A stretch of DNA of 55,350 nt, counting the filler, from Platydemus manokwari (Eukaryota), in NCBI GenBank assembly GCA_037951405.1. It is 5 parts of 5 records of this genome, joined end to end, with 100 filler letters (N's around TTAATTAATTAA, not from the genome) between each part and the next. Parts side by side here need not be neighbours in the genome. Positions count along the whole stretch, not along the records: positions 21,005 to 32,707 come from JBBMOY010509997.1; 4 more parts are not named here. One strand, 5' to 3'. Below are positions 21,941 through 31,639 of this stretch, in pieces; position 1 is the stretch's first letter, and each line of letters opens with the position of its first letter. Under the pieces are notes generated by a model, which was given only the letters and a program-made list of their open reading frames with translations, made no database searches and was not told where the DNA came from. Made by a program: the position numbers and the translations under genes.

Positions 21941-22294
21941 TCAACATTTTGATTTATCGAAAAGTTGCTTCCAACTCTCAGTTGAAATATGTTTATCTTT
22001 AAATTCGCTAATGTTTTTATGAATTTTCCACAATTTGCCCCCGGTTTCCTTTCGTTCTTTGGCTTTACCGGGATCACTTCTCAGTTCCTGAAATTCTTTA
22101 TATGTTTTTCCTAATTCACTTTGAATGTTTTGAAATTGTTCATAAAGATCCGGTGATAGAATTCTTTTCAAATATTCGTTAAGCCTGTCAATATCCTCCT
22201 TCGATGGTTTCCATTTTCCATCTCCACACAATCCTGAATCCACAGTCAGAAGAGACACCACAATGCTCACTAAGAGGAACAGTTCGAATTTCAT
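21941..22294 (-). CDS. Small secreted Lys/Glu-rich helical protein (117 aa), family unknown
   Basis: Clear N-terminal signal peptide (MKFELFLLVSIVVSLLTVDS). Uninterrupted single-exon ORF. TATAAA at 22324-22329 and AATAAA at 21918-21923 (minus). Confidence 0.85.
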   Translation of the reverse strand: MKFELFLLVSIVVSLLTVDSGLCGDGKWKPSKEDIDRLNEYLKRILSPDLYEQFQNIQSELGKTYKEFQELRSDPGKAKERKETGGKLWKIHKNISEFKDKHISTESWKQLFDKSKC

Positions 22295-28400: not shown

Positions 28401-29512
28401 TTTAGCAATTATGATTGGCATAAAATATATGCTGCTGTAACCCATTTGTCAAAGATATATCGTCAATATCTGTCATTTTATGGCACACCATGTGTCAATT
28501 AGCTAGTTATTATGTACTAACTAAGGTCTATTGTGAATGATTGACCTGCCATTTATAGCTGTTATTGTGGTAAACTTCATTCAAAAGTAAATTTCCAAGT
28601 ATTAATCTCAAATCAGCTTGAATTTTCTTATGGATATTTCATATGAAATAAAATGATCAATAGTATCAATAAGAAATTGACAATATAAAATTACGTAACA
28701 GTTCTAATATCATTGAATCTATTGATATAAATTTATCGCAATAATCATCTAATTAAAAAGTAGATTTAACTCCCAAAGATTTTCAATTAATTCAAAATTG
28801 TTTTACACAAGTTGCCAAAATACATAATCCCGATTTTCATTTCTCAAGCCACATTCGATAATTATTCATGATAATATTTATGGTTTGCCCTTTAGTTTCA
28901 CAATGAATAAAACTAAAATATTTTTTAGTATTGCATAAAAACCAATGGTATTGATTTTAATGAGGATATTAAAATCGATTATCGTATTAATTTTTAAATC
29001 AAATTTAGATCGAAACATAAGGCATAGTGAAAAATTTTCAGTTCATCAAAGAAAGAAGAAATCAATTGCAGACTCATGTCAATTCTAGAAAAAAATAAGG
29101 GATTTATGGTGAGCTTTCTAAAGGCTGATAATTTCATGAAACACACAGTATTGGTGTTCGACAAAGCAATAATTACCTCAACGTTGTGAATTTTTAATGG
29201 CCAGGATATATATATATATGTGTGTGTGTGTGTTAACATTGCATAATATCACATGACAAAAATAATACAACCTTTCAAAAAACATGCACTACCGTACTTA
29301 AATTAATACGTCGAAGACTGTTAGCCATATCTGCTTTAATGAATCCATTTTATACTTTATATCGAGATATTAAATCTATTTAATAACTAAATGGCTTGCT
29401 CAATTAATTCTTTAGAATGCAGTCATAAAGAATTATTATCAATAATAAAATATCAAGGAAATTATTAAAAAAAATACTAGCAATATAATTTAATAGTTGT
29501 TACTCCGAATTA

Positions 29513-30661
29513 TTAGTAACTCTTATTTTCTTTTTTCCTTACGCATTCACTTTTATATTCAGCATTGATTGAATCGCACTTATTTTTATAACCCATTTGT
29601 TTTTCGTCACATTCTGCAGTAAACTGAGTGTATCTTACTCCACATTCAACTGTGTCTTTTCCCTTACATTCTTGATCAATATCTTTGAATCCATCGGTAC
29701 AGAATTTGGTGACTTTGGAAGCGTCTGCATCACAAATTGCCAATGCTGGTACCAATTGTTTCAAACAACGGTCAGATTCTGGTCCTGTTGACGGTACGGT
29801 TGGTGCTCCAGTACATTCTTTTTTATGCCTTTTGTATATTGGTTTACACTTCTTTGTGTACGCTTGTCGTCTATCTTTACATCCTTTTTCAAATTGCAAA
29901 GTTTTTAATCCACATTCAATCGTATCTCTTTCTTTACACAATGTTTCAATTTTTCCAAGTCCTTCAGTACATTCTTTGTCGATCGTTGCTATTTCTGCGT
30001 CACACTTATTGATTTCAGGAAGCAGTTGTTTCATACATAAATCTGATTCTGGTCCTTTAGCCGGAGCGGACTTTGGTCCTCTAGAACACTCATGGCTAAA
30101 ACTTGCATATATTGGCCCACATTTTGATTTATATACTTCTCTTAACTCTTTACATTTAAATGTAAATTGATTGTATCTCAGTCCACACTCTACTGTATCC
30201 TCTCCATTACATTCTTTATCAATTTTCTTGAAACCTTTGTTACAATATTTATCGATTTCAGCAATTTCAGAATCACAAGTTGCCATTTGAGATACCAAGA
30301 CTCTTAAACATCGATCTGACTCCGGACCACTTTTTGGTTTAACAGGTGGACCAGTACATTCTTTGTTATGTGCAGCATAAAGAGGTTTACATCGATAATT
30401 GTAAGCTTTTCTTTTGTCTTGACAACGTTTTTCTAATTGTAAATATCTCAATCCACATTTAATCGTGTTTTTCCCTTTACATTCGACATCGATGTTGGCG
30501 ATTCCTTCATTACATCTTTTTTCAATACCACCAATATTTCTATCACATCTGTTAATTCGTGGAAGTAAATATTTCAAACATCGATCTGAATCGGGTCCAA
30601 GACCTTGTGAATTTACAACATTGATAACCAGATATAGAATTAAAAACAGAAAAATCTTCAT
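29513..30661 (-). CDS. Secreted 382-aa Cys-rich protein with four 90-91 aa repeats (8 Cys each; Cx10Cx10Cx10Cx7Cx10Cx10Cx10C)
   Basis: Long single-exon ORF. The true start is ATG 30661 (MKIFLFLILYLVINVVNS-QG signal peptide); the track's 30694 start is TTG. TATAAATA at 30706-30713. Each repeat begins GP(D/E)SD(R/L)C. Confidence 0.92.
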   Translation of the reverse strand: MKIFLFLILYLVINVVNSQGLGPDSDRCLKYLLPRINRCDRNIGGIEKRCNEGIANIDVECKGKNTIKCGLRYLQLEKRCQDKRKAYNYRCKPLYAAHNKECTGPPVKPKSGPESDRCLRVLVSQMATCDSEIAEIDKYCNKGFKKIDKECNGEDTVECGLRYNQFTFKCKELREVYKSKCGPIYASFSHECSRGPKSAPAKGPESDLCMKQLLPEINKCDAEIATIDKECTEGLGKIETLCKERDTIECGLKTLQFEKGCKDRRQAYTKKCKPIYKRHKKECTGAPTVPSTGPESDRCLKQLVPALAICDADASKVTKFCTDGFKDIDQECKGKDTVECGVRYTQFTAECDEKQMGYKNKCDSINAEYKSECVRKKENKSY

Positions 30662-30682
30662 ATCGTCCCCACGATTAGCTAA

Positions 30683-30740
30683 TGGATTTATCAAGTATAT
30701 TGATATATTTATAATATGGTTGAAACAGGTGTTTCAAAGG
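30683..30740 (-). promoter_or_regulatory. Core promoter of the Cys-repeat gene: TATA box with adjacent palindrome containing an E-box
   Basis: TATAAATA 30706-30713; CCATT about 30 nt downstream; TTGAAAC-AGGT-GTTTCAA (30720-30737) contains CACCTG. Confidence 0.5.
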
Positions 30741-31639
30741 AAATTCGCACGGGCTCTTCATTAAAGTTTTTACACAAATCCAATACTTAAATTTAGTAAT
30801 TAACTTTAGCCATTACGCCATTTTAAAGGAGAATGTTTTTCTCAGATCAATTCGAGGTGATTTGGCCAATTGATTTATAAAAGTAAGCCCCATTTATATG
30901 AAATATTTATCAGACAGTTCTTATCAAGTGAGCCGTTTTTTAGTCAAACTTCTTGAGTTAGTTACAACCAATAAACAGATGTTAAAATATGGTTTATGCA
31001 AATTGAATTGTATTTATACATTCACTATCGTATCTACAATTCAAATCAAATATTTAAAATCTCTTATCTAGAGATGTTGCTTTCGTGTTTCAATACTTGC
31101 GACGGTATATCTAAAATTTTGAATTATTTATTTCCATGTGAACATTGGTAGCGATTCTAACTTTTAAAAAAATTTGTTTATTTTTTGAAATTTCATTTCT
31201 TGTTTCATTAATTTGGGTTTCCAACCCAAATATCTGATATCATTTCTTCAAATCAAATAATACAAGTAATGAATCAATAGCCTATAATTTAAAATTATTA
31301 TATTGTTATTATTATTATTATTATCATTATTATTATCTCCTTTATTTATTATAATTTTATTTAATTTATTATAATTTTGATTATTTTATTATATTTTATC
31401 AATTTAATTTGCTATAGGTATGACAAAATCTGAATTTTCTAACAATTTGTGGTCAGCAGATAACAACTCAGAAAATCCAAGTAAGTTGCACCAGAACATC
31501 AAGCAGAATAAAATGACAATCGACATAAAGCATAAAATAAATTTTATTTTCTTCTGATATAACTGAAATCGACAAATTTTGTGACAAAGGGTACAAATAT
31601 ATATATATATTGAACAAGATATACAAAACAAAATTCCTT

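Follow-up and report, generated by a model that had tools for sequence, protein, structure and literature searches.

A gene found on the minus strand at positions 29513–30661 of the analyzed window (55,350 nucleotides of Platydemus manokwari DNA, filler included, in five joined parts of assembly GCA_037951405.1) is probably intronless and TATA-driven and encodes a protein of about 41 kDa that would be secreted and lack enzymatic activity, built of four tandem copies of an unnamed domain, a predicted hairpin that would be braced by disulfide rungs. Whether the module is a natural four-rung hendecad disulfide ladder, a new extracellular fold variant and the first of its kind, is close to an even question, leaning slightly toward no. 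Our tentative best guess for the role of this protein is that it serves outside the cell as a structural, coating, or matrix component.

Translation of this interval revealed a single open frame of 382 codons, which begins with ATG at 30659–30661 and ends with TAA at 29513–29515, directly followed by a second TAA; the strand had not been stated in the first-pass annotation. The complete coding sequence is unbroken and colinear over 94% with that of its homologue P0001, encoded on L001, a 1.5-kb Logan contig from another sample, and is thus intronless. The GC content of the open frame is 34.6%, vs. 27.6% for the whole piece containing it. Outside the gene, the density of stops is 0.075 per codon, so that the probability of 383 consecutive open codons is about 1e-13. 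Comparison of the gene with L001 gave pN of 0.29 and pS of 0.81, the latter being saturated; pN is far below pS, which argues that the protein is under purifying selection.

A likely TATA box (TATAAAT, 30707–30713, minus strand) is located 52 nt upstream of the ATG and would leave a 5'UTR of about 20 nt. Three family loci carry this heptamer at similar distances ahead of their ATG, at -52 in the window, -48 in L001, and -45 in L002; matches of this kind are common in AT-rich DNA, and only the shared position gives them weight. A possible polyadenylation signal (ATTAAA, 29489–29494, minus strand) lies 19 nt past the stop codon; in DNA this rich in AT, it amounts to no more than a match to the consensus. 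No matches to Rfam were found on the piece. None of the RNA runs searched contains the gene, no proteomic sign of its expression was found, and the protein is missing from a collection of 15 billion sequences, as might be expected of a chance open frame, a pseudogene, or an assembly artefact. Such a non-functional origin is effectively refuted by the improbability of the open frame, the low pN relative to pS, the homologues in other sources, and the contigs of a public run (X1) that match the gene exactly. With an open frame beyond chance, purifying selection, homologues, a shared TATA position, and variant copies in run X1 that keep every Cys and gain no stop, this is a real gene.

The protein starts with a predicted signal peptide (aa 1–18; 30608–30661, minus strand), read from the sequence as MK, 14 hydrophobic residues, and NS|QG. 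In this N-terminus, MKIFLFLILYLVINVVNS|QG, a hydrophobic core is followed by V and S at positions -3 and -1, respectively, and the S|QG junction is also kept in P0001. Cleavage after VNS would leave Gln19 as the first residue. All five relatives described below (P0001–P0005) share the layout of a signal peptide followed by modules.

Four modules of 90, 91, 90, and 90 aa follow, each with 8 Cys: module 1 (aa 22–111; 30329–30598; predicted helices aa 26–60 and 67–102), module 2 (aa 112–202; 30056–30328; helices aa 113–151 and 157–192), module 3 (aa 203–292; 29786–30055; helices aa 207–241 and 248–282), and module 4 (aa 293–382; 29516–29785; helices aa 297–332 and 338–372), all on the minus strand. 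The first-pass annotation had described four modules with 32 Cys in an x10-x10-x10-x7-x10-x10-x10 spacing, and a recount by script gave exactly this: the gaps are 10, 10, 10, 7, 10, 10, and 10 in all four modules, and 15, 16, and 15 between successive modules. The spacing, called palindromic, consists of two four-Cys runs with an 11-residue period flanking a short loop. The linkers, previously described as Pro/Gly/Lys-rich and ending in GP(D/E)SD, are rich in Pro, Gly, Lys, Ser, and Thr, and GP(D/E)SD opens every module (GPDSD in the first, GPESD in the other three). A linker/N-cap motif, T-G-x-P-x-x-P-x-[ST]-GP[DE]SD, is common to the window protein and P0001. The four repeats share 38–53% mutual identity. 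With a pI of 8.7 and a net charge of +15, the mature protein is basic; Cys makes up 8.4% of the residues encoded. The net charge of individual modules varies from -1 to +11 and is not conserved. At the end of module 4 lies a short basic tail, which contains the sole N-x-S sequon of the protein (N379).

Each module is predicted with good confidence to form a long helical hairpin. The AlphaFold2 model of module 1, based on an 8-row alignment with rows from only two proteins, contains a helix at positions 5–40, a loop at 41–45, and a helix at 46–80 (pLDDT 87.4, pTM 0.68), and all five models score 85–87; AlphaFold yields helical hairpins generically for amphipathic helical sequences. The first-pass annotation had proposed an antiparallel hairpin of two helices of about 34 residues. 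The model agrees with this proposal, showing two helices of about 35 residues and neither a non-hairpin nor a beta-rich fold; the predicted rod would be about 5 nm long.

The register of the Cys residues fits this hairpin. Column analysis placed every Cys at hendecad position a, as expected from the earlier claim that they lie on one helix face. Positions e and h are occupied by Leu/Ile/Phe in helix 1 and by Tyr/Phe/His in helix 2, and the remaining positions mostly by Lys, Glu, Asp, Arg, or Gln. Eleven residues of an α-helix correspond to a rotation of 1100°, that is, about three turns plus 20°, and the four Cys of each helix thus form a nearly straight stripe; this spacing is the one that keeps all of them on a single straight line. 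A Cx9C spacing would rotate by about -80° and would suit two rungs only. Within the module, the Cys are located at positions 7, 18, 29, and 40 of the first run and 48, 59, 70, and 81 of the second, so that partners at equal height satisfy i + j = 88. The partners in register are C1-C8, C2-C7, C3-C6, and C4-C5, and four nested disulfides with this pairing would fit the model. The four Cys of helix 1 would then face the four Cys of helix 2, and in the oxidizing secretory pathway they would form four nested rungs about 16.5 Å apart. Metal binding by these Cys was considered and rejected: the modules have no CxxC or CC, the number of Cys per module is even, and a signal peptide is predicted.

Four Cys in line on one helix face might also zip to a helix in a second chain, and tandem modules would permit networking. 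The stripes might then pair between chains, forming a disulfide-cross-linked coiled-coil network and a tough secreted material. This arrangement is quite improbable. AlphaFold2 folds the module back onto itself with high confidence; pairing within the molecule is suggested by the short conserved loop C-K-G-K-D-T-x-E-C and by the even division of the Cys between the helices; and the two-helix layout is retained in the single-module relatives.

The full-length model, built from a two-row alignment, contains eight helices in four hairpins, with low overall confidence (pLDDT 64, pTM 0.28) and with pLDDT below 50 in the linkers at 105–117, 192–206, and 284–296. The chain of rigid rods suggested in the first-pass annotation is consistent with this model, which fits independent rods on flexible tethers. 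Such rods would be rigid and resistant to proteases and heat, strung on short, flexible, Pro-rich linkers.

The module belongs to a nearly orphan, previously unnamed domain family of about 90 residues, as defined by sequence searches. A word-index search of 5.8 billion clusters with the whole protein found P0001 as the sole homologue (378 aa, 55% identity, 94% coverage), with four modules and identical Cys spacing. When a profile of eight modules (A1) was run exhaustively over all 1.84 billion representatives, five relatives were the entire yield: P0001 plus four secreted proteins with one module each, 127–129 aa long (E 6.5e-14 to 4.4e-5). All four of the latter have the exact x10-x10-x10-x7-x10-x10-x10 frame after a predicted signal peptide, as well as an extra C-terminal tail of 22–28 residues that is not present in the window protein. 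Two of them are UniParc entries (UPI0006093242 and UPI000605CC4D). The other two, P0002 (L002:1068–1457) and P0005 (L003:61–444), originate from one ENA metagenome assembly, ERZ27256860, where they are encoded on AT-rich, eukaryote-like contigs (25–29% GC). The domain also stands alone in secreted proteins of other, presumably AT-rich eukaryotes. The single-module proteins form two subfamilies, P0002/P0003 (34% identity) and P0004/P0005 (44% identity). P0002 and P0005 are found in one assembly and belong to different subfamilies, which suggests at least two paralogues per organism.

In total, the eight-Cys spacing is unchanged in all 12 modules from six proteins and at least four sources. The 8 Cys are the only invariant columns in the alignment of these modules; an Asp follows C2 in 11 of them. 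In the tree, the eight modules of the four-module proteins form one clade (100/100), odd-numbered modules cluster together (88/90), and window modules w1 and w3 are paired (94/92). The grouping of odd modules suggests that the four-module layout arose by duplication of a two-module unit, possibly with later homogenization. No further relatives were found in word-index searches with one module (no match) or with the 12-row alignment (nothing beyond P0003 itself), in scans of viral contigs and of JGI metagenomes, or in an ESM Atlas feature search with the window protein and P0003 (no usable match).

The module had not been recognized earlier as a named domain, and Pfam, PDB sequence, Foldseek, VIA-align, and ESM Atlas searches likewise assign it to no family. 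In Pfam, the whole protein and the 12 modules gave only sub-threshold matches to FAP206, GDNF, COX6B, and Colipase-like models. No PDB sequence was matched by the single sequence, and the profile gave no real match there. The module model had no Foldseek match in PDB at E ≤ 1e-3, and the shape searches by VIA-align and ESM Atlas found only generic long helical hairpins. The closest structural neighbors are ESCRT-III, prefoldin, ROP, and designed hairpins, with Z of 8–9, which is within the background for helical models. A literature search for the motif, for Cx10C ladders, and for hendecads with disulfides found no description of this frame.

The CHCH or twin-Cx9C proteins (Cox17, Mia40 substrates, COX6B, and NDUFA8) resemble the predicted module fold in having a helix-loop-helix hairpin with Cys about three turns apart on each helix; in CHCH proteins these Cys form nested disulfides. 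COX6B was matched by 4 of the 12 modules (best E 0.061, below threshold), and NDUFA8 chains were touched by the PDB profile search at E of about 5. Both of these echoes are CHCH proteins, so the likeness is one of the Cys-on-helix pattern, with no detectable homology; the Pfam CHCH-type models (CHCH, CX9C, COX17, Cmc1, COX6B, and NDUF_B7) gave no significant match. Several features separate the two groups. CHCH domains have two rungs, Cx9C spacing, and short helices. The window modules have four putative rungs and predicted helices of about 35 residues and stand four in tandem, and each helix of the 12 family modules has three Cx10C intervals. CHCH proteins lack a cleavable signal peptide and reach the mitochondrial intermembrane space through the MIA40 relay; in contrast, a hydrophobic, signal-peptide-like N-terminus was found in all six family proteins, which are predicted to be secreted.

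Another similar group comprises the disulfide-stabilized helical hairpin peptides (CS-alpha/alpha toxins, plant alpha-hairpinins, and the acrorhagin I type), which are secreted two-helix hairpins with nested disulfides. These peptides have 30–50 residues, CX3C spacing, and usually two disulfides, whereas the window modules have 90 residues and Cx10C spacing. The disulfide-stabilized helical hairpin motif is cited in PMC11299110. Membership in the CS-alpha/alpha toxins was rejected: the fold class is alike, but frame and length differ, and neither sequence nor fold searches gave a match. The Cys frame of the "Unknown 12C" scaffold of sea anemones is also different.

GDNF/GAS1 (PF02351) was matched below threshold only, by the whole protein with 16 bits (E 0.021) against a gathering threshold of 22 bits, and by individual modules in 2 of 12 cases with E ≥ 0.22. 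This candidate was rejected, and no GFR-alpha structures were present among the fold matches. The MMR repeat proteins of rotifers, which act in mate recognition, come from intronless genes whose UTRs are very short. They start with a signal peptide and consist of head-to-tail helical repeats of 87–92 residues with no database relatives; their pI is about 4.2, 55–60% of their residues are non-polar, their repeats are near-identical, and no Cys pattern is reported (PMC2746195). The window gene resembles them in the absence of introns, the short UTRs, the signal peptide, the tandem helical repeats of about 90 residues, and the scarcity of database relatives. Compared by description only, it differs in pI (8.7), Cys content (8.4%), and repeat identity (38–53%), and the MMR proteins were rejected as relatives; none of them was among the matches of the profile search.

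To our knowledge, the only disulfide-stapled helical hairpins described so far are small units with two rungs, those of CHCH proteins and of short toxins. The family is a new one that would build on this known principle. The gene would carry the principle further, with four rungs at even intervals along long helices and the unit multiplied four-fold in a secreted protein. The orphan family has hardly any relatives in a collection of about 15 billion proteins and offers a clean structural prediction. If this is true, it would be the first natural case of an 11-residue Cys period zipping two helices of about 35 residues along their whole length, with hyperstable 5-nm rods strung by evolution into multi-rod proteins. 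The domain family, new and confined to a few AT-rich eukaryotes, would also provide a rigid, redox-switchable building block for protein engineering.

The proposed mode of action follows from the stapled hairpin. A hairpin that is closed by four rungs would not open and would have neither a pocket nor catalytic activity. The protein would thus act through its highly charged, fast-evolving outer surface and its physical properties. A structural or coating role is our best guess and is favored over both multivalent binding, the main alternative, and processing into peptides. We hold it lightly, since the charge per module is not conserved and no composition signature of known adhesives or eggshell proteins was found. 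The variable charge also argues against a simple cationic antimicrobial mechanism.

Processing would make the protein a polyprotein, cleaved at its linkers into separate stapled hairpin peptides of about 9–10 kDa with antimicrobial, toxin-like, or signaling activity. Precedents exist among processed four-module helical disulfide precursors: prosaposin, a proteolytically processed precursor of the secretory pathway, has four tandem all-helical modules of about 80–90 residues with nested disulfides, and the window protein would be like it in this respect. Saposin modules, however, have 6 Cys in another pattern and a 4–5-helix fold that opens for lipid. A saposin assignment was rejected, as the modules have eight Cys at hendecad spacing and no match to SapB_1 or SapB_2 even at E ≤ 10. 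The occurrence of the same Cys frame in single-module secreted homologues and the conservation of the linker/N-cap motif in both four-module proteins are in line with processing. Nevertheless, the linkers of the window protein and P0001 contain no dibasic or RxxR convertase site, which is an argument against cleavage, if not a decisive one. Additionally, the modules are not consistently cationic, and the C-terminal tails of the single-module relatives are missing here. Taken together, processing is unlikely.

Multivalent binding is a similarly unlikely reading, in which diverged hairpin surfaces and the avidity of four modules would serve a toxin, defense, or recognition function, with a receptor, channel, microbial surface, or gamete as the proposed target. 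Secreted proteins with tandem cysteine-rich repeats are known as SCREPs (PMC6262176), and the window protein fits this definition, which calls for secretion and at least two such repeats, by its predicted signal peptide and four 8-Cys repeats. SCREP is an umbrella label and not a family, and its described members mostly have knottin, Kunitz, and similar beta-rich folds. Weighing against a binder are the lack of similarity to any toxin or recognition family and the fact that no conserved surface patch was identified.

The variant contigs of run X1, which may be the source sample, bear on the same question. These contigs are about 92% identical to the gene (range 90–95%; window positions 29677–30639), and the summed contig depth, which is not a copy number, is 2–4 times higher over the gene than over its flanks. 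The listed differences comprise 15 synonymous and 22 non-synonymous codons, with no Cys lost and no stop, which points to divergent alleles or to close paralogues at other sites of the genome, their scaffold fixed and their surfaces changing. Fast divergence of exposed positions on a constant scaffold, and the extra depth if it reflects such alleles or paralogues, would suit a multivalent binder. The gene marks a lineage-restricted, apparently fast-evolving secreted protein, and where it is expressed would hint at what it does.

Several observations concern the DNA around the gene. A module relic is located at 31547–31603 on the plus strand, opposite in orientation to the gene and about 0.9 kb upstream of it. 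It encodes ...DITEIDKFCDKGYK..., matching aa 131–147 of the protein (tblastn E 0.006), and forms a 56-nt inverted repeat of 77% identity with 30217–30272, with stops on both flanks. This relic is probably what is left of a copy that was duplicated in inverted orientation. A single contig-level joint connects 29448 to 31057, with "TT" between them, at a depth of 10.7, which is below the criteria for listing joints. It would remove the whole gene with its promoter and has TAAAAT-like microhomology at both edges; it could stem from a presence/absence haplotype or from misassembly of the AT-rich sequence. Microsatellites (TAT/ATT)n and (AT)n/(GT)n at 31282–31388 and 29201–29239 show very high contig depth, and reads appear to be cut there. 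An intronless open reading frame of 117 aa at 21941–22294 (minus strand) gave no Pfam match above threshold and no ESM Atlas relative, and was not found in the 15-billion-protein collection. It has a signal-peptide-like N-terminus, is charged, looks helical by eye, ends in Cys, and coincides with a local GC bump of 0.35; it may encode another lineage-specific secreted protein.
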